DNA of 61,741 bases, the filler included, from Syncephalis fuscata S228 (lineage: Eukaryota; Fungi; Zoopagomycota), in assembly GCA_025786725.1 (NCBI GenBank). It is 3 parts of 3 records of this genome, joined end to end, with 100 filler letters (N's around TTAATTAATTAA, not from the genome) between each part and the next. Parts side by side here need not be neighbours in the genome. Positions count along the whole stretch, not along the records: positions 1 to 20,199 come from JAHLTZ010000168.1; 2 more parts are not named here. The stretch is one strand, 5' to 3'. How positions within the stretch are numbered: position 1 is the stretch's first letter; each line of letters starts with the position of its first letter. The notes below the pieces were generated by a model, which saw nothing but the letters and a program-made list of their open reading frames with translations, was not told where the DNA came from and searched no databases. Position numbers and translations under genes: made by a program. Positions 2,860-20,199 of the stretch are shown here, in pieces.

Positions 2860-3319
2860 AGCTACTGTACTTTGATTCTCACATTTTCATTTATTTATCT
2901 CACCCCTCAACACTTTTAAATACAATTAAACACTCACTCATCACTATAACATGTATAATATTGCATCGAGCATTAATTAATTTATATGTAATTATCAATA
3001 CAATAATGTAATTAAATATGCACATTGCAGTATTAGTTGAAGTTAAAATAGCATTTAATAAAATAAAAGGCTTTTTACACTAAATTGTTAAATATCTTTG
3101 TTGAAATGGTCTACAAGCATAAAAAGAATAAATAATTGCAATTATTAAATATAATTATTATAATATACAAGTGTGGTTCAAGTAAACAAAAACAAGATAG
3201 AAAAGAAATAGATCATATAACAGTTTGATGTGCAGTATGACAAACAGGCAGCAGAAGTAGTGAGGAATGACATAGAATCGCGATCATATGGCTTCTATTA
3301 ATATTCGATTAATCTTTCT
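2860..3319 (+). repeat. Left arm of a ~460 bp inverted repeat (partner 11990-12449)
   Basis: Reverse complement of 11990-12449 with ~13 substitutions (mostly transitions) and no indels by manual alignment. Outer end reads TA|CTGTACTTTGATTCTCACA. Confidence 0.95.
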
Positions 3320-3955: not shown

Positions 3956-6900
3956 TTATTGATTGTTGTTGCTTTTATATAATAGCTGAGCCGTTTGCAT
4001 CGTTTCAGAATGAAGTGCTATTAAACGATAATAGCAAAGAATTTGTAAACGATTTTGACGTGTTTGTAGATCCAATTGTGTATTTCCGTGTAATTGCTGG
4101 ATACGTCGATCAATAATAGTTAAATCAAAGCGATAACGACAATCTAATGGACGATGAACATCGGGCGGGCAACCAATGGGACACTGATTCTCGATAGCTG
4201 CAATAGCAAATATTGCAGGAGAAAATGGAACGGGATTGTTGACTCGTTGTAGAAATGCAGCTTGTTGCTCAAACAGTAACTGTTGCTGTTGTCGTTGTAT
4301 TTTTTGCTGCTGTAATTGCATCAACAATTGTGTACATGTTTCTTGAACTGTTGAATCTCGAGTAGTGGCTAGCGGATTATTAATTGGATTTGCTACAGAT
4401 GGATGAGGTCTATTAGTTGCTGTATTTGACTATTACAAATAATAAAAAATTAGTTAATTAAATATCATCATAATTTTAATCACTTACTCTATTTGCTTGC
4501 TGTGTTAAAGGACTAAGTTGCATATGATTAGGCACGTTACTTCCATTATTAGTTGTTGAAACCGGCATTGGTCTATTGACGGGCCTATTAGATCCAGTAG
4601 CCATTGATGACGGCGTATTCGTCATGGGCACTGTTGGTGGAGTTTTAATAGTATTAGCTAGCGTATATAACGGAGCAGCACCACTTGGCGTTATAGGTGC
4701 AGCAGCAGCTTGAGTTGTTTTTCTTGTCCAATTCTGGGTTTGTTGTTGTTGCTGCTGCTGTTTTTGTTGGCTATCCGAATGTAGTGTAGACATAGTAGCC
4801 AATGTCGAAATAGCCCCTGAAGGTACTGGTGGTGTCGTTGCTGTTGGATATGAAGAGCGACTATTATGTTGACTTTGAGTAGGCTTCATTGGCAAACTTG
4901 CTAATGGTGTAGAAGTCATCACTGGAGGAAATGCACGCTGTGTTGGCAGTATTGTTTCAGCTGCAGTCGTTCCAGTTGCCACTACTGTCTTTGTGCTATT
5001 AAGCATTTGATAGGCAGTTGATGTAGGTTCAGTTTTCAACGGTGTCGTTAATGGTGCGGACTGAGTAGTCGCTGTTGTTGCGGCTGGTGCATCTGCCGGT
5101 GTGTTAATCGCTTTAACGGCTGAACGCGGAGCATCTGATAAATTAGGAAAGTTATTCTTCATCTTTGGCCAAGGTATTTGCCATGTCTGTTGAGGCTGTG
5201 CCTGTTTATTCGATACCATTGGCTTTTTAAACGATAATAAACGAGATGCATCTGTTCCTGGCTTCATAGGCAACGGTGCAGTGGCCGGTTTAGTTTGATC
5301 ACTTGTAGCTATATTTTTGCTATTATTATTATTACCAACTTCATCATCTTCAAGTTCAATAACAACAGGCGATGAAGGTTTTTTTATATCTACAATTGGT
5401 AATGGCACAGCAGTTACAGTGGGGAATGTAGGCGGTACTGGCGTTGTATTGATAGATTTTTGCTGCTGCTCTTTTTGATCACTTGTAGCTAACTTTAAAG
5501 ATCCACCTTCAGGTAACAAAGTTACCGAAGTATCATTTGCCGTCTTCGCTGTTGAAGCTGCTGATTTAAAAGGCGCTTTTAATGGTGTCGAATCTATTAC
5601 CGTTGTTTTGTCATCATACTTTTGTAAAATAGCATGAACAATTGTGTGGTAATATTCAGTCGGTACCTTATTACGATTAAAAATCTCCTTGATTTGTATA
5701 TAGTTTATATCTTTGTTCACTTCTGTGTTAAATCCACTTTGCTTTACTTTTTGTCGTGCTTCTTGCATAAGTGCCGTAATATTGATTCGATCTTTAGGAT
5801 CAGTGATGTAGCGTTCAATAATATTATCTTGATTAGCCACTTCATTTGATACTTGTAATACTGTTTCTTTTTTAGTCTTTTCTGCTGGTACAGACACAGT
5901 AGTTGAAGATGTTGGCGGTGTTCGATAAGACGACTGTCTATTTTCATTATTAACGGGTATTTTGCTGTCATTAGCTATTGTTGGTGATTCTATCGATAAA
6001 TCAGATTTGACAGCTACTTTATCGTCTATTAAGGCAACATCTTTACTATCGGCCATTGTCACAACTGTAGTAGTAGTAGTAGTAGTAGCAAGTTTAGATA
6101 CTGGTTGTTTCTCAATAACCTTTTCTTTTGGCGATGGCTCAACTCGATTCACTGCTTGTTGATTAGTGGCTACATTAACTTGTTTTGCTTGGCTATTATT
6201 ATTATTATTATTAGCAGGCTTTGGTACTGTTTTGACTGAGCCCAATGATAATGGTGTGGTGATCGGCTTTAACTGTCCATCTTGCCAAATTTGTGTAGGA
6301 GATGCTGTTGGATTAGATCCTTTAGGCATCCGTTTCATTTGTTGTATCATCGTTCTAAAAGCTAGTTTTGTGTAAACAGTATGAGGCTTGTCCTTAATAT
6401 ACTGCTTAGTTGTTCTATTAAAACCACATGCTAATATTTCAGGCAACACTACTGCCAATGAAGCAGTATTGGATAATAGCGGTAGAAATAATCCTTCTAA
6501 TAATTGTATAAAGTTAAATAACTATAATATTTGTATTCACATAAATACTTACCTTCAACCGATTGCTGAATAACAAGATGAAAGATTGACATATTCTACT
6601 TAGTGTGTTAATTAAACTGTGTATATCTATTAATACTAATTAGCATTACTTACTTCCAGTGATCCAACACCGTGACACTGTTCAATAATCGTTTCACTTT
6701 TTACAACTGGACTAAGAAATATAAGTGTATCGACTATTGTGAAATACGAAGCCATGTTATTTGTAGCCAGTATTAATTTATAGTGTTGTTGTTCGAATAA
6801 ACTAAGCGACAGATGTAACTTCTCTTGTGACATATTCTCATCCTAATTGATTCAAAGCAATGTATAAATCATTAGTCTATCAGTAGTTTGTTATTCTATT

Positions 6901-9900
6901 ACGCTAATAAACTTACCATACATAAATGAGGAATTGATAATAAAGATAAAAATGAAGAACAGCGGTCCAGTATTTGCTTTGTATGAGCAACTAGTAAAAT
7001 ACGACGCTGTTCAGGTATTAGCACTGACAATAATAGATATAATACAGCATATTTATCAGATCCTTGTTCTGGAGAATTAGCCGGTGGCGATAACAGTACA
7101 TTAGCAGTATTTGAATCAAGTACTGGATAATCAACAATCTTCCGTAACTCATTAAATAGTTGCTGTGCCTTAATAGTCACTGCCTTATTTGAACCAGATA
7201 CATGGGGTAGTAATAGAGTAGATTGATTTTTCTCTAATACTTGTGAATATTGCAGTTGTTGCTGTGTAGTCATTGTTACCGGTAAAATAACTTGTACCTA
7301 TTTAGATATGTATATGTATATTAATCAATTAAATAGCCTTATTATTAGCTATCATCTTACTTTACTGGGCAACTCATTAATTACTTGCAATTTGGTTCGT
7401 CTCAATACATGCTGGTTTAATATCTATATATTTAATGGATTGCTTAATTAATCAGCTAGCTACTTAATTAATACAATAAACTTACTTGTTCTTGTTGACG
7501 TTTTTCATTCTCTAAATCAATAGGCTTATTTCCCGCCCATTGGCCTGGATTCAAACAACGAATCCATGGCAGATAACGCTGCGTAAATTGAATAGAATGA
7601 CCTATTAAATCAACATTATAGTTGATATATTAATTACTATATTTAAACTCCTTACCATCAAGTAAAACTGTTTGTTGTCGCTTTAATTGTTGAAGTACAT
7701 TAACCAACCGAGTAGATATATCGGTACTGCAACTAGATACATCATCAATGACAATAGATGACCAGGCCTGATTCTTAAATAGCGACTCATCACAAATCAA
7801 GGTCTGATAGCTGACCACAACAATATGAGCGGTTAAACGATTAGTCCATGGCTTTAATGCAAGTAAGTGTTCAGCGGTCACTTGTCGTAACTCACTAACT
7901 CCTGCATAGGTCAATGTAATTACTCGAAGTGTATCCCACGTCGATAATAGAGCTTTCCAGTGGAATATCATCGATTCATGTACAATAATCAATGAAGGAT
8001 AATTCGTATATTGATCTTGCTCTATAATATAATTTAAAAAGCAGATAACCTGTACTCGTCGACCAAGACCGTGTTCATCATTTAACCAACACCAAGACAA
8101 AGAAGAATCCTTTTCTGTATTGATTGAAAATGAACGTTGCCATTGTGTATATAACCAACTAAAATAAATAAACAATTATTAATTAAATAATATTAATTAC
8201 AATATTACTCACTTTACACCTATTTGTTGATATGGTTTCAATGAAAACCTCGAACATAATAATTGTAACCTTGATTCACTTGTGTTTATAGACTTATTAT
8301 TATCATCTAATGACAATGATGATTGTGGGGTTGAAAATGATTCAGGAGTAATGGTCATAAGTAAAGTGTAGAGGTAGAATTGAATAGCTCGTATATATTC
8401 ACTATATGAAATATCATTCTCTTTTAATGGCAATTCCCATGTACCTATTAATAGTAACAATAACAGCAATAATATAAATAACTATTAATTAATCAGTTCA
8501 TTTAATAATAAACCTACCTTCATTGGCTGGTAATTCCTGCCATTGAATATAAACTTTACTAATATGCGCCATTAGCGACGTTACCACTGCTGTATCTAGG
8601 GCCTCTATTATTATGGCGTTTAACAATGTATACTTATTCCGTACAATCTTTGCCTTTTGTCGTCTCAATAGCGGCATAACATGAAGTGGCAAGGCATTTG
8701 GCTGCCATCGAATACAAATAATACTCTCAACCATCGTCCACGCTATTGATACAGATTGTCGTAACGGTAATAGGGTTCCCGATACTGAAGATGCTTCATA
8801 TTGCTGTAATAATAAAGGTGAAATGGCAGAAATCCATGAAAATGATGCCCATACAATGTCTCGATATGATTTATGTTGAAACTTTATACAATAATCACGT
8901 AATGGATATGGAACTGTATCAACAACAACAACAACAACAACAACATTAGTACTAATCGTATACTATTATAATCTACATACCAAATGTATTATCGTTAAAG
9001 TGAGGTGTAGCTTGAGATGACCGAGAACGTGATGTTATAATTCTTTCTGGTGTCCATGGACATTTTAAACAGTCATTGCATTCCCATTGTTGGTTAGGAG
9101 GGAAGAATTTACTTGGAAAGCATATTTTATGAGCTGATCGATGACATCTCCGACAATTGATAACTGGCTTTAAATGAGCAGCAGCAGATGGTTTAGATGT
9201 TGACTGATTATCCAGTTCAGTATTAATGGCAATACTGCATATAAAACATTGCTTAAGTGGTGGAGTGTCTTTCAATGTAGTTAGTGGTGATTCATTAATA
9301 GTAGGCGTGGCGGGTGTATTATTTAGCATACGCTTCCCATTATTTTCTTCTTCTTCCTCTTCTGATGATAAATCTGGACAGACCCATGATGTTTTGGTGG
9401 GTGTGTTCTGCCCTCTTACTGGTGACACTGTACGTTGACCTAACATACGCTTTTGTGTATTCAATTTATTGGACCATACAGGCTGAACCACTTTGCTTGG
9501 TTTATCTTTATCCATATCACTGTTACTGTTACTGTTACTGTTACCGTATTGGCTATTATCTTTACTACGAATATCCATATCACTATTAGAGTCATTATCT
9601 TTTATAATTATTTTAGTAGGTCTTCTTTGTTTCTGCTGATTCTCTTTACTATTTGATAGCTTATTTTTTCTAAGTGATAATATTGGTTTATCGTCATCAC
9701 TATCATCGTCATCACTAGTATTGCCATCACTTTTATCGCCATCACTATCATTATTGTTGCTTTCTTCGCTAGATGAGTCTTGTTCCGATGATATTGATAG
9801 CTCTCTGGTACTTTGAGTCATAAATAGCTTGTCTGAACAGATAGTAAAGCGTATAATTTTTGGATGTTCAATAACAATATTTTTCCATCCATTCGCTTTG

Positions 9901-10881
9901 CTTGATGATTGACGGGCAGCAAATTCAAAGGTTTCAATCAATAATGAGGCACTGTCTAATGAAGATAATTGTTCCTATAGAGTAAACGTTAGTATTAGTA
10001 ATATATAATATTATTATAATGCTTACCCAGCTATAGGTGCCCATGATGTCTCTAACCAAGTAGTAAACACGTCCCCCTTCTTCAGTACGTTTAGCAACAA
10101 TCTCTTCAATATCCGTAGGTGAATTTGATTCATTAGATGTGCTATCTGTACTCATGGCCATATTAGATGTATTAAAAGACTTTTTTATAGATATTTTAAA
10201 GTGACGGGCTGCACTCAAATAGCTGTCATCTTGTTCATCTGTTGATAGTAGCGATCGCTTCAGTCTTCTTTGCCAATCTTTGTAATAAGAGCGTATTGGA
10301 TGATTGGCTTGTATCATAGCCTTTATAATAGAATCGACTGTATGTTCTAATGGCCCTTTTCGTTTTACTAATGGCTTTTTGGATTTTATAGCTGATTGTT
10401 GATCATTTAATTTACCATAAGCTTTGCGTTTCATCGGTGGCCCTTGAGGGCTCGTCGAATCAGATTGGCCTGTGTTCTTTGATATGGAGGCTGTTTTTGT
10501 ATGTGATCTATCCTTCATTGGCGTATCGTCATCACTAATTGAGCGTTTACGAGAATAACGAGCTATATTCTTTAATCGTTGTCTATCAAACTCTCGTACT
10601 AGATCAATACAGCCATCAAGATTCGAAATATTCTCCCACGTAGCTTGATCCTCTGGGAAATTAAGCCATTTTACGTAATAAACTGGTCCACCTGGCAGAT
10701 CCTCATAATCAAGAATTCTTTCTACTTCATACACATTGGCTTCATCAGGAGAGTTGGTGTTAAGACTTTCTATTTCAATAACATCGTGTTCTTTCATACT
10801 GTCGGTGTTGGCGTTAACTTGATTGCGACGGCGTTGACGCCGTGCTTCTTTCTCTGCTCGATTCTTACTGATGTTAGTCAT
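3956..10881 (-). CDS. Mit1/CHD(Mi-2)-like chromatin protein with extra N-terminal chromodomains and a degenerate SNF2 ATPase
   Basis: About 12 exons. Chromodomain YEVERILD..YYVKWLNFPEDQATWE; second chromo-like IEEIVAKR..YYLVR..YSWEQ; PHD CFIC..CRRCHRSAHKIC..WECNDC; two further chromo-like segments (PERIITSR..IKFQHKSYRDIVW; VESIICIRW..VYIQWQELPANEG.TWELP); SNF2 N-lobe LKPYQQIGV..DEHGLGRRVQVICFL; helicase-C remnants; long S/T/P/Q-rich region; C-terminal CPIGCPPDVHRPLDC zinc-finger-like motif. Confidence 0.8.
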
Positions 10882-11794
10882 AGAATGATCAATGACTCTG
10901 GGCTTGGTACGGCTTGCCGTAACACTCGTTTCTGTTAAGTTGTTTACTTTTTAGCTGTTACCGATACAAATAGTGAAATTGGCTAGACTGATTTTAACTA
11001 TAGATTCATCATAGCGTAAATATATTGAATACATTTATGGCAGTTTGCCGTGCTAAACTGGAATCATTCAGTGGTACTTACCTTGTACAGCGACAATTAC
11101 GTTCGAATTTAATAGCCGTATTGCAATTCAATTACTGTAATCAGTGTATATATATATTCAATTGACCGCACAGAAATGACGTGGACGCTAGAGGTAACAG
11201 GCAACAGAGTAAATAGATAAAAGAAAAAGGCTAGACGCTGATGAAAATGTTACACGGTATGTGCAGGTGTGTGTAAATAATAAGACAATTCTAGACTCAG
11301 TACGCGAATATTTAAATAATAGTTGTTAAATCTAGTGTTTATATTATAATATAGCTGCATTAGTGTATTAATTAGCATGTCTATAATGATTATAAATAGT
11401 TTTGACACTTTAACAATATACTAGATATTATTAATGATAAATTGTAATGATCATTAGTATGTTGTCATATGACCATTATTTGTGACATGATCCAATGTGG
11501 CGTGTGTGTGTGTGTGTGTTTGGACTAATGTCCTTTTTTGTAACCATTTTCCTACAATCTTCTCATCATATGTCATGGCTTGTAAAAATCAGTATATGGC
11601 AAGATTTGGAAGTGAATGGTGTGACAGCAATAAAGACTATTAAAACTATAAATCTATTATAGTTTAAGTTTACATTAGTGTATTGGTTTAACTAAATAAA
11701 ATATAATGTATTGTTATTTAATTAATCATCTGCTATTGTTATTAATAAGCTACTTTTTAATTAATACTTGTATACTATCATAAATTAGGACGAA

Positions 11795-12444
11795 CTGTAC
11801 TTTGACTTTCACACTTGTCCCCAAAGCATAAGTTGTTTCAATCAGAGTCATGTCATTGTTATACACAACATAGTTATATTACTTTATATTAAAATATTAT
11901 TAATAAGTTGATTTAAATAAACAATGTAATATACTATTTGATTTATTTGAAACATTTAAGGTTAATTATTATTGTTGTTGGTCATGCGTAGAAAGATTGA
12001 TCGAATATTAATAGAAGCCATATGATTGCAATTCCATGTCATTCCTCATTACTTCTGCTGCCTGTTTGTCATACTGCACATCAAACTGTTATATGGTCTA
12101 TTTCTTTTCTATTTTGTTTTTGTTTACTTGAACCACACTTGTATATTATAATAATTATATTTAATAATCGCAATTATTTATTCTTTTTATACTTGTAGAC
12201 CATTTCAACAAAGATATTTAACAATTTAGTGTAAAAAGCCTTTTATTTTATTAAATGCTATTTTAACTTCAACTAAAACTGCAATGTGCATATTTAATTA
12301 CATTATTGTATTGATAATTACATATAAATTAATTAATGCTCGATGCAATATTATACATGTTATAGTGATGAGTGAGTGTTGAGTTGTATTTAAAAGTGTT
12401 GAGGGGTGAGATAAATAAATAAAAATGTGAGAATCAAAGTACAG
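11795..12444. mobile_element. ~650 bp MITE-like non-autonomous element with imperfect ~20 bp TIRs
   Basis: Left end CTGTACTTTGACTTTCACA (11795) and right end TGTGAGAATCAAAGTACAG (12444) followed by TA. No ORF. Its right ~455 bp is the copy repeated inverted at 2864-3319. Confidence 0.65.
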
Positions 12445-12449
12445 TAGCT
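11990..12449 (-). repeat. Right arm of the ~460 bp inverted repeat (partner 2860-3319)
   Basis: Direct manual alignment to the reverse complement of 2860-3319, ~97% identity. Confidence 0.95.
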
Positions 12450-14182
12450 CCATCAAATTAACCAATTAAATATCACTCAGTAGTATAGATACTAAAAACT
12501 TGTTTATTAATATTATGCATGGACATCTATAAGTGTGTATTCTGTCGATATACTGGGTGTTACAATAAAATAGCCATTTATCCACCTTGTATCTACCTAT
12601 ACTATTAAAGAAAAGTTAAATAACTACTGTTGTAATAAGCATCTGCTATACACAAACTAATACACTGACTGACACTTGTATCGTTACTCAAGGTGTCAGT
12701 TTATACATATATATATATATATATGGAAACAATGATATTATATGATAAAAATCCATAATGCCTATTTTTAGTTTTATCACACAAAATCAAATGTTCACTT
12801 AAATTGAGTAATTAACGTTTATATTGGCTATATCGGAAGGAAAATACTCGGCTCGGTCTTTTATTTCTAATAAGCGGCCTTTGAAATTATTAATACACTT
12901 CCCAATGGATAGCCAAAATACGTAGACCGACCATTCTACACCGATAGTTGTACCATCTCCGCCTGTTTTTTACTATCATTATTGCTATGATGTGATGTGT
13001 AGATAGGTAGGTGTGACTCGTACGACCTTTGAGGTCTATTTTTACTTGTTTCTCTTCCTTTGGCTGCATATTCAATCCAATAGTAGCCGCCTAGGCTGCA
13101 TGGCCGTTATTGGCCGTTGGAACGCAGCTATCAGCCTCCCATCCTTTACCATTGGACTTTACACACTATAGTAATGGCAATAATAGGGAGGTGTACTGTT
13201 GTAGGGTGAAATTGTGCGTGCACGCGCATTTAACACTATCTAAAACTATAACACCAACTTTATTGTAGTCTTTAGCAAGCTAGTTTTACTGACTGGCGAG
13301 TAATCATCGTAACTAGTCTAATTACAACACAGTATTAAATTGGATTTGCTTAAAAGTTGTTAAAAGATTTCCGTTTACGCTCTACAATTCGATTGCATTT
13401 CCGCATCTGTCGCACTATTTTCGCCCTTGCACGTAGGACTCCGCCTTTTTCTCTTTGCCCTTTTATTTATCCTAGCCTACTCGCTCTCGCTCTCGCTCTC
13501 TCTTCTCGCTTGCTTTCTCTCGCTCGCTCTCTATTATATTAACCTATTATTACCCCCTTGTTTAGTACGTGTGCGTGGGTTAGGTGTACGCGTGTACGTT
13601 TGTGTTTTTGTGTGTGTGTGTGCTTGCTTATTCTCGCCTTGCATTGATAGCCACACCTACATCATCATCATCACCGTCACTATCAGCAATACTCTGACGT
13701 TATAGCACTTGGCTTTCTACATAGACGCACGCGCACACACCTTTTGACCTATTAGTTTATGTGTGAATGTGCATGTGTATGAGCTATTGATACTAGGAAT
13801 ATATTTTTGAGAAGCATTCATAATTGCACTGTCTAGTCCGAGACTCTGTGGCAGATTCTCATCTGACTGCATTATTTAACACTCCATCAAACAAACAACA
13901 TTTTTCATTAGTTTACTTGGTTCAAGTAAACTTCAAACGTTAGCTAGCATTGCTTTGGGTGCGGACGTTGTACTAGCGGGTTTTTTGCGACGACGCACAC
14001 ATTATCAGCTTAAACATCCCTTTTTTAACTCATTTCGCAATTAGCCATTCTATTTGCACAATTTGACTAGCATTTACTTTATTGTAAGTATAAATTGCGT
14101 AAAAATAGTCAATATCATTAATTAATGATTAATTAATGTTTATTTTAATTATTTAGATTACTAGCACATTTTTTTCTACACT

Positions 14183-17100
14183 ATGGCTTCATCCAATAGC
14201 CATAGTCGACATCCCTCAGTAGAGGATCGAGAAGATTTGGTGCAGATACCGGCCGAGTCTTTAAACGATGACTCTGTAGCTGAATGTCTACGCACTAGGC
14301 ATGGCCGCGAACAGCCTTACACTAACTGCGGGTCCAGCACATTGACTGTTGTTAATCCAGGCCGTTATATTTCAATTATGGGCGATGAAACAGCTAAACA
14401 ATACGCTAGACAATACCGTGATGTAGAGTCTGCAGATCAAACTGAACTTTCTCCCCATGTATTTGGATTGGCAACAAAGATCTACATGAATTTACGTAGA
14501 TTAGGACAGGATCAAGGTATTATTTTTGGGTAAGTGGATTACGGGGGAAGTGGTAAAATAAAAATATAATTAGAATATGTGCTAATAATAGATATTTATT
14601 ATTATAGTGGTATTGCCGGCAGTGGTAAAACAGAAAGTCATAAGGCTTTAGTGCGTCAGCTATGTCTTTTGGCCGCTCATTCAAAGAAGGACGCCAAGAT
14701 GCACGCGCAAGTTCAACAGGCTCAGCATGTTCTTGAAGCCTTTGGCAATACACGCAGTGTCAATAATCCAAATGCCTCTCGTTATGGTCTATTTGAAGAA
14801 CTGCAATTTAATGAACGTGGCCGTGTTGTCGGCGCCAAATTCCTTACATTTGGCTTTGAAAAGACACGTGTTGTTGCAACCAATTCACAAGAACGTAGCT
14901 TCCATGCCTTTTACTATTTGTTGGCTGGAGCCAGCAGCGAAGAACGTCAACGCTGGCAGCTGCGTGATATTACATCATATGCATACCTACGTGGAAGAGC
15001 TACACAAATACCTGGTGTAGATGATACACTAAAGTATCAAGAAGTTACCGAAGCTATGCGTGTGTGTGGTATCAAAAGCCGTGCTCGCGATCAAATATTC
15101 CAATTACTATCAGCAATTCTGCATCTTGGTGAACTCGAATTTGATGAAGGCGAGTTGCCTGATGATGCGTGTACGATACGCAATCATGACCAATTAGAAG
15201 TTGTTGCCACATTACTTGGTGTAACAACTGCAGCACTTGAAACAGCTTTAACACACCAAACAAAACAAGTTCGTGGTGATGTGTGCACCGTATTGCTGAA
15301 TCCCGAGTCGGCACGCCATCATCGAGATGGATTTGCTTGTGCACTTTATTCATTGCTATTCACATGGCTTGTTGAATGTCTTAATCAAAAGCTATGTCAT
15401 GAAGAAGAGACTGTTAATATTGTTGCATTACTCGATCCACAAGGCTTCCGTACTAGTTCTGATAGCTCTAATAACAGCAAAGGAGCAGCTACAGCCGACT
15501 TTGAAACATTTTTAACCAATTTTGCAGCTGAACGTGTACAAGCTTATGCATCACGTCGGGCATTTGAAGGTCCAGTAGATGCTGAAATTCGTGCTGATGG
15601 CCTACAAGTCCCTCGTGTTATGTGTGCAGATAATGCCGCTTGTGTCGAGCTATTGCGCGGCAGTTCAACCAAAGAACAGTCGATTATTACTACACTCGAT
15701 ATTGAGTCGGCTAAATCTGAAAGCCGTCGTTCTGAAGGCCAGCTAGTTGCTCAATTAAAGAAGTTATTTTCTTCGCATGGTAACTTTGCTCGTCCATCAG
15801 TCGATGGTGCATGGTCTATTATGCATTATGTTGGCCAAGTCACCTATAGTGACGATGATATTCTTAGCAAGAACTTGGATATTCTATCGCCAGACTTAGT
15901 TAATGTATGTCGTAGCTCAAAGTCGCCATTCATCTCTGAACTTTTTAGTTCCATGGCCGTTGCTACTGAGGCCAATCCACGTGACTCTCGTGCTATTGTA
16001 GCTGCACAACAGTCGGCTAAACCAATGCGAGCTCCATCCCGTCGTGTAAAGCGTGCAGCTACTCGTAAAGGTGGTGATGCAGCAGCTGAAGCTGATGCAG
16101 CTGACGACTTTAAGCCAGCCAGCGATGGAAAGAACGGTGTTGCACGTCAAATGGATTCGGCACTTGAAGAGCTGTTCATTACTATGGATGAGTGTCGTGT
16201 ATGGACTGCATATCACATCCGTCCAAGTGAAGCTGACATGATTTCAACTGGCGCTGCTCCGTCATTCGACGTCAAGAAAGTTCGTGCTCAAGCACGCGCT
16301 ATGTTAATTCCAGAATTGGCACGCCAACGTCAAACAGCACCAGATATGACAATATCTTTTCCACACGATGAATTTTTACAACGTTTTGACTCGCTGTTGC
16401 GTTTATTCCAATTGGATGCCAGTCGTTCACCACGTGAAAAGATTGGTGCATTAGCCATGATTAAAGGGTGGTCAGAAGCTGACGCATTGGTTGGTGAACA
16501 ACGCGTATTTTTGCGTGAAAATATCTGGAAACAGTTTGAAGATGGACTACGACAAGCTGAAAAAGGTGAACGTGCAGCACGTAAAGACCAAAATACAGAT
16601 GAAGTCGAATCTAATGATTTGGCGCCGCCAAGGGCACCAATGCTACAACAGCACAATATGGCACCCGCTTCAGACCGTGGATCTATGGCCATGCCAGCAC
16701 CTTATGCGTCATCATACGCCGGCGATAGTCAAAGTGTTATATTTAACGATGATGAGTATCTTCAAGTTCGTAATCATCCCAGCGCATACCCAGGTAGCTA
16801 CAATGGCACTAGCGGTCCTTCAAGTTACTATGGTGGTGGCAATATGACTGCACAAAGTCTTTCGCCTGGTCATCAATACGATGACGATTCAGTATCGCTT
16901 TATGAATCGGTATATCATGGTGCACGCAGCCAAGCAATGAGCCAAGGCAACCATTTACAAAATATGTGGGGCGAAAACGAAGAGACGCCACTGACCGAGC
17001 AAAAGAAAGTACCACAGTATGAAAATGCACAGTATGATCCGCCTGAGGATGAAGAAGAAGATGAAGTGTCACGTCAACGTCGCTGTTGGGTCTGCTGTAC

Positions 17101-20100
17101 TTGGGGACTTACTTGGTGGATTCCTGAGTTCTGTATTCGAATCTGTGGTCGAATGAAGCGTGAAGATATTCGTATGGCCTGGCGTGAAAAGGTCGCTATT
17201 TGCATTATCATTTTCCTGATGTGCGCTACTGCTATTTGCTTTATTCTTTTACTACCAAAATTACTTTGTCCAACGACATATTTGTTTACAACTGATGAGC
17301 TTAGTCATTACCAAGGTACTGATGCCATTTATATGGCTGTACGTGGCGAAATTTACGACACAACTACATTTGCCAAGTCTGGTCATGGCGTGAGTAATCG
17401 TCCTGTAACTCTTGATAACATGCTCGACTACGCTGGCAAGGATGTGACGCGTTTATTTCCTATTCCATTAACTGTAGCTTGTGCCGGTCTTGTCACTAAC
17501 AAAGATGTGACGGTAAAAGGCGCTGTTGAAGATGAAGTGGAAGTAGATCCAGTTGCTGTACACGCGTCATCTAATCCACTCGCCGCCGGATCTAATGTGC
17601 GACTAAGTGAACCTAATTGGTTTAAAGATGTATTTATTCCAAGAATGAAACGAACCAGAAAAGGAGCTGTGGCCTATAGTCGTAAAGAAGTAAAGGATTT
17701 GGGCCAGAAGGGTACAAAACGCTGGTCTATTATTGGCGACGAAGTATTCGATCTAACTCCCTATTATCGTACTGTCAATCGTAGTGATGTTACTGCATCG
17801 CCGAAGAAAAGCGATTGGGAGTACTTTAAGGGAATAGATACTCTTTTCATCGACTATGCTGGTGAAGATAATACAAGCAGATTTAAAGGAATCAAACCAG
17901 CCAGCTCCCAAGCACCGACACTTGCCTGTTTACGTAATATGTTCAGAATTGGTGTTGTTGATGTTCGTAAAGAATTGAGCTGTTTATTAGCCGATTATCT
18001 TCTATTGGCCACTGCTTGCTTTTTAGGATTGGTTATTTTGGCCAAGTTCTTGGCTGCATTGCAATTAGGAACACGTCGAAATCCTGAAGATCATGACAAA
18101 TTTGTTATTTGTCAGGTGCCGTGTTATACCGAAGGTGAAGATTCACTACAACGGGCATTTGAATCATTGGCTATTCTTAATTACGACGACAAGCGTAAAC
18201 TTATCTTTGTTATTGCTGATGGTATGATTGTTGGCAGTGGTAATGACCGGCCAACACCACGTATTGTACTTGATTTACTTGGTGTTGATCCAAAATATAA
18301 CCCGGATCCATTGCCATTTAGAAGTATTGGTGAAGGTGCAAATCAGCTTAATTACGGCAAAGTTTACTCTGGTCTATATGAACATGAAGGACATGTTGTA
18401 CCGTATTTAGTTGTCGTTAAAGTTGGTCGTCCCACTGAACGTAACCGCCCTGGTAATCGTGGTAAACGTGACTCGCAAATCATTCTAATGCGTTTCCTCA
18501 ATCGTGTTCATTTCGATCGAGCAATGTCGCCACTTGAACTTGAAGTATTCCATCAGCTAAAGAATGTTATTGGTGTACATCCAAGCTTCTACGAATACGT
18601 TCTTATGGTGGATGCCGATACACAAGTATCTACACAATCATTGAATCGACTCATTTCGTGTATGTTGCACGACCAGCGTGTTATGGGTATTTGCGGTGAA
18701 ACACGCCTGGCTAATGAAGATCTTACTTGGGCCACTATGATTCAAGTATACGAATACTACATTTCGCATCATATGGCCAAGGCATTTGAATCGCTATTTG
18801 GTTCAGTTACTTGTTTGCCTGGTTGTTTCTGTATGTACCGAGTACGTACACCAGTTAAAAATCGACCACTTATTATTGCCGATGATATTGTTAACGCGTA
18901 CAGCGAAACGCATGTTGATACTTTACATAAGAAGAATTTGCTATCACTTGGTGAAGATCGTTATTTAACAACACTAATGTTAAAGCATTTCCCACAATAT
19001 AAGATGACATTTACACCAGATGCTACTTGTGAAACGGCTGCACCGGAGAAATGGTCCATTCTACTTTCACAACGTCGTCGTTGGATTAATTCAACTATTC
19101 ACAATCTAGTTGAATTGCTATTCTTGCAAGATCTGTGCGGTTTTTGCTGCTTCTCTATGCGATTTGTTGTTATGATCGATTTGCTTGGTACAATTACTAT
19201 GCCTGCCACCTTGGTTTACATTGGCTATTTGATTTATATGGTGGCCGATGCTAAAGCTGAAGGTCGTCCACTTAATATCAGCTGGGTATCATTAGCCATT
19301 CTTGGTGCAGTCTATGGTCTACAAGCAGTTATTTTCATTTTGAAACGTCAATGGCAACACGTAGGCTGGATGATCATTTATTTGTTGGCTATGCCAATAT
19401 TTGGTTTTATGCTTCCTCTTTATTCATTCTGGCATTTCGATGACTTTTCATGGGGTAATACGCGTGTTGTTGTCGGTGAAAATAAGAAGAAGAAGGTTAT
19501 TGTCGTTGGAGAAGAAGAGAAGTTTGATCCACGCGATATTCCACTGATTACTTGGGCTCAATACGAACAAGAGATGTGGGAAAAGGGCACCACTGGATCA
19601 CAAGGTTCGCAATTAACAAGTATTAGTCGACGCAGCCACAGCCACAGCCGTGGGCCAGGTTCAGTTGTTGCCGAATCAGTTGCCGGTTCGCAGTATGGCG
19701 GTAGCCAACGAGGCGGATTTGGAACATTAAATGTTCCAGGTAGCAATGATTATCGTCATTCACAAGGATATAGTGTGGCCAATGGATCAGTATTTGCTGG
19801 CGGTAACACAGCTGGCTCTGCTTACATGCCACCCGATCCAAATCGCTCTATGGCCAGCAACTATGGGGCTGGTCCAGCTCGTAGTGAATATGATCCATCA
19901 ATGGCATTTGGCCCATCGGCTACCATGAACGATAATGGCATGCCACGCTACAGCATGATAAGTAATGCGCAATCAGTTGGTCCACAATATGTAGCTGGTG
20001 GGGTACTGGGTGGCATGGGTGTTGGCCAGCCAAGCGACGATCAATTGCTAGCAGAAATACGTCAAATCCTCTCAACTAGCGATTTGATGACCATTACTAA

Positions 20101-20199
20101 GAAGCAAGTACGCGAACAACTTAGTCAGATGCATGGTATCGATTTAACACCGCGCAAAGAGTTCATCAATAATACAATCGACATGGTGCTACAAGGCCG
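14183..20199 (+). CDS. Class V-type chitin synthase with N-terminal myosin motor domain (CsmA/Mcs1-like), cut by the contig end just before the stop
   Basis: Exon 1 14183-14529, intron 14530-14607. P-loop GIAGSGKTE and EAFGNTRSVNNPNASRYG; two cytochrome-b5-like segments; [26 protein letters not shown] and WHFDDFSWG motifs; C-terminal DEK-C (LLAEIRQILSTSDLMTITKKQVR). Confidence 0.95.

Follow-up and report, generated by a model that had tools for sequence, protein, structure and literature searches.

A 61,741-nucleotide stretch of DNA from Syncephalis fuscata S228 (three parts joined end to end; hereafter, the window), a mycoparasitic zoopagomycete fungus, carries on its minus strand a gene (3956..10881) for an ATPase-dead protein of the Mit1/CHD-II type. 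With little more than even confidence, we read this gene as a Mit1 that has lost its motor and has been kept by purifying selection, its product being a predicted reader and scaffold of heterochromatin that works without an ATPase. To our knowledge, full-length two-lobed SNF2 pseudo-ATPases are rare.

The gene comprises 12 exons and 2,084 codons, with consistent phases and zero stops. Exons 1-6 lie at 10881-10027, 9974-8981, 8913-8518, 8444-8213, 8158-7656, and 7601-7486, and exons 7-12 at 7423-7361, 7297-6917, 6842-6654, 6595-6553, 6496-4488, and 4429-3956, separated by 11 AT-rich GT-AG introns of 52-74 nt. Contigs assembled from one public sequencing run match 10 of the 11 exon joints exactly, and the run holds transcripts, since splicing itself is visible in the contigs. 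One contig spans exon 3 to exon 11, and a second covers exons 1-2 and runs on for 66 letters, which is exactly how far exon 3 extends before it reaches a variant site at 8847, the start of the first contig. Intron 2 holds a CAA repeat, and the link between exons 2 and 3 was drawn from the contig ends; very likely, a single transcript runs from the chromodomain to the C-terminus. The original prediction of a frame and splice sites intact over ~7 kb thus agrees with the transcripts, as does its treatment of the region as one gene rather than two or more. A probable intron in the 5' untranslated region has its donor at 11081 and its acceptor at 10955 (10955-11081).

The motor is degenerate at every motif that marks an active SNF2 enzyme (Walker A GKT, Walker B DExx, V, and VI), as judged from the translated exons. 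Walker A reads DEHGLGRR (8079-8056), with both the lysine and the threonine replaced by arginine, and Walker B reads DDVS (7746-7735), with the catalytic glutamate replaced by aspartate. Motif V reads ATNNMASY (6767-6744) and motif VI reads TIIEQCHGVG with both arginine fingers gone (6692-6663), these two being assigned by position and forced alignment, as exon 9 was unscored by the fungal Mit1 profile. All four degenerate motifs had been predicted at these places. Motif III reads DGH, and the DNA-contacting motifs Ia, IV, and IVa are degenerate too. Among 119 fungal Mit1 orthologs retrieved with a Dispira protein as the reference set, Walker A is DEMGLGKT in 106, Walker B is mostly DEGQ or DEGH, motif V is intact in all 119, and motif VI has both arginines in 118. 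The Q-motif, which reads LKPYQQ (8241-8224), survives, as do the P-loop glycines and the first Walker B aspartate. Lobe 1 of CHD1, SWR1, and ISWI can be aligned with exon 5 (Pfam SNF2-rel_dom, 51 bits). Searches, profiles, and folding were run per exon or per domain; fragment alignment outside lobe 1 was poor and was never used as a query. Because the lysine, the Mg-binding threonine, the catalytic glutamate, and both arginine fingers are lost, established SF2 chemistry makes ATP hydrolysis by this protein very unlikely, and nucleotide binding may still be possible given the retained Q-motif, P-loop glycines, and first Walker B aspartate.

The same dead motor was found in a metagenomic ortholog, L034, whose base composition and intron style are similar to those of Syncephalis. 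The two proteins are 30-41% identical over the four longer exons and 52% over the 21-residue exon 7, and the genes share introns. L034 has DEHGLGRRVQ exactly as in S. fuscata, with Walker B DDLV, a Q-motif reading LKPFQI, and motifs V and VI that have degenerated in a different way; the lobe 2 motifs of the two dead proteins are unlike each other. A run of ten identities against a background of 37-40% has a probability of 0.005-0.009, and among the best 150 matches the DEHGLGRR-type motif occurred only in these two lineages. A word search with protein P0001 found no further dead orthologs, one with exon 5 gave no match, and scans of metagenomes returned no further ortholog and one chance bacterial match (L035). 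Taken with the selection seen between the two haplotype-like copies (below), this comparison indicates that the motor-dead state is old and constrained, and that the gene is not decaying.

An invariant DEHGLGRRVQ in distant species, together with the retained Q-motif and two Walker B aspartates, could also point to an atypical but active ATPase, in which the P-loop arginines, or an arginine finger supplied in trans by a partner, allow slow hydrolysis or a nucleotide switch. We consider this quite improbable, however, as the losses extend to the Walker A lysine and threonine, the catalytic glutamate, motifs III and V, and the two arginines of motif VI, and the lobe 2 motifs have diverged between the two dead proteins.

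Constraint was also seen within the S. fuscata genome. The locus lies on contig C77 of the 29.4 Mb assembly, and a collinear second copy of the whole locus (96.6-98.3% identical) lies on C328; half-depth read variants suggest that the two copies are haplotypes. Compared codon by codon, they differ by 36 replacement and 32 silent changes over the whole gene, a ratio of replacement to silent polymorphism (pN/pS) of 0.32 (p 5e-6). In the ATPase exons, a single replacement stands against 6 silent changes (pN/pS 0.05, p 0.0006), the same ratio as in the adjoining chitin synthase gene. The value near 1 expected of a decaying gene was thus not seen. Exon indels between the copies are in frame, except for a one-base loss in a T7 run of exon 1 in the C328 copy (at 10181), which the transcript contigs do not have and which is probably an assembly error. 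This deletion may explain the truncated public gene model that hides the full protein in databases: a public protein returned by a large protein search, KAI9597705.1 of Syncephalis fuscata (99% identical), is a 675 aa model that starts downstream of the first chromodomain and ends inside exon 5.

Low identity to intact orthologs, the one-base deletion, and the truncated public model might be expected if a Mit1 relic were decaying into a pseudogene as the parasite's genome shrank, but the reading frame is open over its whole length, it is transcribed and correctly spliced, pN/pS is far below 1, the other indels are in frame, and the dead motif recurs in a distant species. We therefore rejected the pseudogene reading, which retains only a very slight probability. 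Many loci likewise occur twice at 97-98% identity (C101/C149, C339/C352, and C24/C72, in addition to C77/C328), as uncollapsed haplotypes that inflate gene counts.

Several lines of comparison place the gene in CHD subfamily II with Mit1. Exons 2, 3, 4, 5, 7, and 8 align in order along the fungal Mit1 profile, with exon 10 aligning weakly at its expected place, and the PHD finger, tandem chromodomains, and two-lobed SNF2 core of this subfamily are all recognizable. In a tree built from lobe 1 only, S. fuscata and L034 pair (100/99) and join the ATPase-intact metagenomic protein L032 (94/98), with the Chd1 group apart (97/96); branches are long and the exact placement is tentative. The gene accordingly groups with Mit1 and not with Chd1 in these alignments, in keeping with the ancestry first proposed for it. 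L032 has at least five intron positions in common with the S. fuscata gene and is the top-scoring intact protein on a profile of the dead clade, and appears to be the nearest intact relative of that clade.

A survey of SNF2 genes in the S. fuscata genome listed ~19 loci, and 18 besides this gene were retrieved. No active Mit1/CHD-II paralog was found among the loci examined, in an assembly that is possibly incomplete. Only Chd1 and the Mit1-like gene have chromodomain matches ahead of the ATPase. The locus that an intact Basidiobolus Mit1 matches best proves to be a genuine Chd1, C-terminal domains included; two further loci are DDM1/LSH-like and Fun30/Fft3-like. The gene is the sole detectable Mit1/CHD-II copy, and the earlier suggestion that it acts as a dominant-negative decoy against Mit1 falls away, there being no active paralog found for it to oppose.

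A related possibility is a nucleosome clamp or competitor, in which the dead motor would occupy the remodeler docking site on marked nucleosomes and block Chd1, ISWI, or SWI/SNF, so that silencing would come from steric protection and not from enzyme recruitment. Strong constraint has preserved both lobes, an RRTK helix after lobe 1, and the tandem chromodomains; Walker A lysine-to-arginine mutants of SNF2 enzymes are commonly dominant negative; and insensitive searches for the SHREC components Clr2 and Arb2 found neither. However, DNA-contacting motifs Ia, IV, IVa, and V have degenerated as well, no active Mit1 to compete with was found, and a conserved 27-residue motif in the tail (see below) suggests partner binding; we regard a clamp as unlikely.

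Returning to the reader and scaffold favored here, the N-terminus opens with a chromodomain of the HP1/Clr4 type (CD1; 10573..10731), which scores 63.9 bits for Pfam Chromo, has the HP1 chromodomain as its best PDB match, and bears the aromatic cage (Y..W..F) reported for it originally. CD1 is 36-50% identical to the CD1 of ATPase-intact Zoopagomycota Mit1 proteins and 35% identical to one chromovirus chromodomain from its own genome (45-65 versus 36 bits). Being closer to the orthologous CD1s, it is not a recent capture from a chromovirus (one element compared). Intact Zoopagomycota Mit1 proteins with an N-terminal caged chromodomain (P0048, P0156, P0160, P0174, and L032/L033) come from two species of Dispira, from Basidiobolus ranarum (two proteins), and from metagenomes. 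Because caged CD1 is found on ATPase-intact Mit1, it must have been gained earlier in Zoopagomycota, as an event separate from and independent of motor loss. No published account of a CD1-bearing Mit1 was found in the literature searched, the coverage of which was incomplete.

The second chromo-like domain that had been predicted is present (CD2; 9909..10113, split by intron 1), but it is cage-less and is not a chromoshadow domain. CD2 is also N-terminal in Mit1 of Mortierellales, Mucorales, chytrids, and Zoopagomycota. Its profile matches chromodomains: 12 of the 15 members hit Chromo, 2 of 15 hit Chromo_shadow weakly (best E 0.011), and 2 of 15 hit DUF7141, with S. fuscata CD2 hitting only Chromo. 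CD2 is probably the counterpart of the cage-less CDL of Schizosaccharomyces pombe Mit1, which binds the Chp2 chromoshadow dimer (PMC6499331); a direct match between CD2 and the S. pombe CDL was not obtained. Next come the predicted PHD finger (9060..9248) and tandem CHD chromodomains (exons 2-4; 8371..9047), which align in order on the Mit1 profile, the chromodomains at profile positions 146-190 and 303-406. Their individual Pfam scores are below cut-off (PHD/PHD_2, and a weak Chromo_MIT1). The proposal that an HP1 protein had been fused to the remodeler was not borne out. A chromoshadow domain is not present in the protein, the caged chromodomain is older and sits on intact Mit1 proteins, and an HP1-like gene with chromodomain and chromoshadow-like exons exists elsewhere in the genome, found by reading its locus by eye.

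What may be left of the post-ATPase brace/bridge and a DUF1087-like segment (6276..6446) was read by eye against Dispira and L032 and is conserved with L034, with no significant profile score. The ~750 residues behind the core are mostly of low complexity, interrupted by three ordered islands. A four-helix domain (5607..5825; AF2 pLDDT 79) is shared only with L034, and a 27-residue motif within low-complexity sequence (5103..5183) is identical to L034 at 18 of 27 positions, making it a candidate partner-binding site. Neither element had a match among ~270 other SNF2 proteins retrieved, and both appear to be present only in the dead clade. For the four-helix domain, atlas and fold searches found no clear relative; PAH/HHD peptide-binding bundles (Z 5.2-5.6) stood among unrelated hits at noise level. 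At the C-terminus, a Cys/His knuckle is followed by a helical hairpin (4013..4183; AF2 pLDDT 85). The CxxxC..H....C motif noticed earlier is there (4183-4139), but its match to Mit1 tails is weak (hhalign E 0.0014, probability 18%). The model superposes on the Clr1-bound Mit1 C-terminus (5IKF chain A) with Z 5.2 and a root-mean-square deviation of 2.1 over 49 residues, at rank 38 and within helical-hairpin noise. PF18585 (zinc knuckle/Clr1-binding) gave no Pfam hit at the C-terminus, a C-tail profile drawn mainly from basidiomycetes missed exon 12, and the L034 sequence ends before this region. The knuckle-hairpin is a likely, though weakly matched, homolog of the Clr1-binding C-terminal region of Mit1.

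The two tail elements restricted to the dead clade, the faint likeness of the helical domain to PAH/HHD peptide-binding bundles, and the existence of a separate HP1-like gene are compatible with a scaffold that has taken a new job beyond constitutive heterochromatin, run by the new tail elements, e.g., as a sequence- or H3K27me-targeted repressor or as a nuclear hub in the parasitic cycle. CD1 is nevertheless closest to HP1/Clr4-type readers, a Clr4-like methyltransferase gene is present, and the Mit1-type C-terminus seems retained, and such a change of job is in our view as improbable as the clamp.

The genome was also searched for silencing partners. One class II histone deacetylase (HDAC) was found (L043; C24:~166.6-169.6 kb) among three zinc-HDAC loci detected genome-wide; in the part scanned, low-complexity sequence rich in Ser, Arg, and Asp comes after its catalytic domain, and an Arb2 domain was not seen. 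Nothing was matched in the genome by PF23615, PF18585, PF01393, PF09757, PF10383, or the post-ATPase exon of L032, searches that are uninformative as the exons are short. Many near-identical integrases of chromodomain-bearing long terminal repeat retrotransposons occur throughout the genome (e.g., L036), which suggests recent activity and makes these elements likely targets of H3K9me silencing.

The findings above show how the gene is built, which motifs it has lost, that it is under selection, and where its domains occur in other fungi; beyond them, we infer the following steps for an ATPase-dead scaffold. CD1 would bind H3K9me tails directly, a task of Chp2 in S. pombe, and the PHD finger and tandem chromodomains would add contacts with histone tails and DNA. 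The two RecA lobes would stay folded as a rigid nucleosome-docking body, maybe binding nucleotide, with no hydrolysis or translocation. The C-terminal knuckle-hairpin and the two new tail elements would bring in repressors, for instance the class II HDAC, and other motors, e.g., the DDM1/LSH-like and Fun30-like proteins, would have to move the nucleosomes of heterochromatin. Precedents exist for parts of this mechanism: the SNF2 motifs are dispensable for silencing by plant MOM1 (PMC2507757), and Hda2/3 use an ATP-less SNF2 lobe to scaffold an HDAC (PMC7793584).

Several observations weigh against the proposed role. The K587A mutation abolishes silencing by tethered Mit1 in S. pombe (10.64898/2026.05.03.722496); for a role that is structural only, the new tail elements would therefore be required. 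The aromatic cage cannot tell H3K9me from H3K27me, the C-terminal homology is weak, and searches of the genome for Clr2 and Arb2, insensitive as they were, came back blank. The haplotype test of selection in the ATPase exons rests on 7 changes, and a single dead ortholog was found.

A bolder form of the same reading, which we consider doubtful, is that S. fuscata has replaced its only NuRD/SHREC-type motor with a full-length, two-lobed pseudo-ATPase that reads H3K9me itself and silences transposons without remodeling. Here, the invariant double-arginine P-loop would be a new nucleotide or phosphate switch, and the 27-residue motif would be a recruiter of repressors, a fungal equivalent of CMM2 in MOM1 that arose independently.

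The surroundings of the gene are repetitive. A dispersed repeat of ~655 nt resembling a miniature inverted-repeat transposable element (MITE) lies outside the gene on either side, as a truncated copy on the plus strand (2860..3319) and a full copy with ~20-nt terminal inverted repeats on the minus strand (11794..12451), 97% identical to each other. This 460-nt inverted repeat, together with another inverted pair enclosing an Est1/SMG-like gene, could suggest that the gene is transposon cargo carried between the repeats as a Pack-type element. We rejected this reading and give it hardly any weight, as the arm is a repeat with at least 40 copies and terminal inverted repeats of its own, no target duplication was seen, and the gene occupies a single locus, has identical neighbours on C77 and C328, and has introns in common with orthologs outside S. 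fuscata. Neighbouring inverted copies are more alike (97% here, and 99% over 674 nt for L006/L007 around the Est1/SMG-like gene, C339:593241-599727) than unlinked ones (86-93%), hinting at possible local gene conversion or paired insertion; an inversion between the two haplotypes was not seen. The divergently transcribed chitin synthase gene (14183-20199), cut by the edge of the piece, encodes an ordinary enzyme with a myosin motor (Myosin_head, Cyt-b5, Chitin_synth_2, and DEK_C).

CHD3/Mi-2/Mit1 proteins might silence either by moving nucleosomes or by serving as scaffolds for deacetylases, and fission yeast requires the ATPase. Where the one Mit1 that can be detected is dead by nature and still conserved, the moving role would be separated from the scaffolding role, and the intact Zoopagomycota Mit1 proteins with their own caged chromodomain may represent a Chp2-independent route to heterochromatin. 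S. fuscata itself, an obligate mycoparasite, is poorly suited to genetic work, and what the protein does is predicted from its sequence. A description of the protein was not found in the literature, within incomplete coverage, and the main text of a CHD survey that included four Mucoromycota species is without mention of Zoopagomycota.

Among known systems, S. pombe Mit1 is closest in layout, its CDL-like domain, PHD finger, tandem chromodomains, pair of SNF2 lobes, and C-terminal Cys/His knuckle following one another as they do here. It differs in needing its ATPase for silencing, whereas the S. fuscata protein is without the catalytic motifs, and in having neither the extra caged chromodomain nor the new tail elements. 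Of SHREC, S. fuscata has the class II HDAC, and Clr2 was not detected by the insensitive searches made. The ATPase-intact Zoopagomycota Mit1 proteins (Dispira parvispora KAJ1963963.1, the two of Basidiobolus ranarum, and L032/L033) have the same CD1-CD2 start and CHD core, but, unlike the S. fuscata protein, canonical Walker A and B and motifs V and VI. With the HP1 proteins Chp2 and Swi6, the S. fuscata protein shares a caged chromodomain of the same type; without a chromoshadow domain, it would have neither the chromoshadow dimer nor the PxVxL groove. Yeast Hda2/Hda3 are likewise an ATP-less SNF2-derived fold that docks a class II HDAC on nucleosomes (PMC7793584), but consist of lobe 2 and a coiled coil only, whereas the S. 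fuscata protein has lobe 1 and reader domains; its HDA2-3 Pfam hit is weak and generic, and intact Mit1 proteins score higher. The parallel with plant MOM1 that was drawn at the outset holds as far as MOM1 is a CHD-II derivative with dispensable SNF2 motifs and a long C-terminal extension carrying short new conserved motifs (PMC2507757, PMC9113485), on one of which its activity rests (PMC9113485). However, MOM1 arose by duplication beside active PKL-type CHDs, whereas no active subfamily-II copy was found in S. fuscata, and Arabidopsis MOM1 has deleted lobe 1 and the reader domains, whereas the S. fuscata protein keeps both lobes and all readers. MOM1 belongs to the plant PKR1 clade and the lobe-1 tree indicates a fungal Mit1 origin for the S. 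fuscata gene, and the resemblance is one of analogy only, with separate origins.

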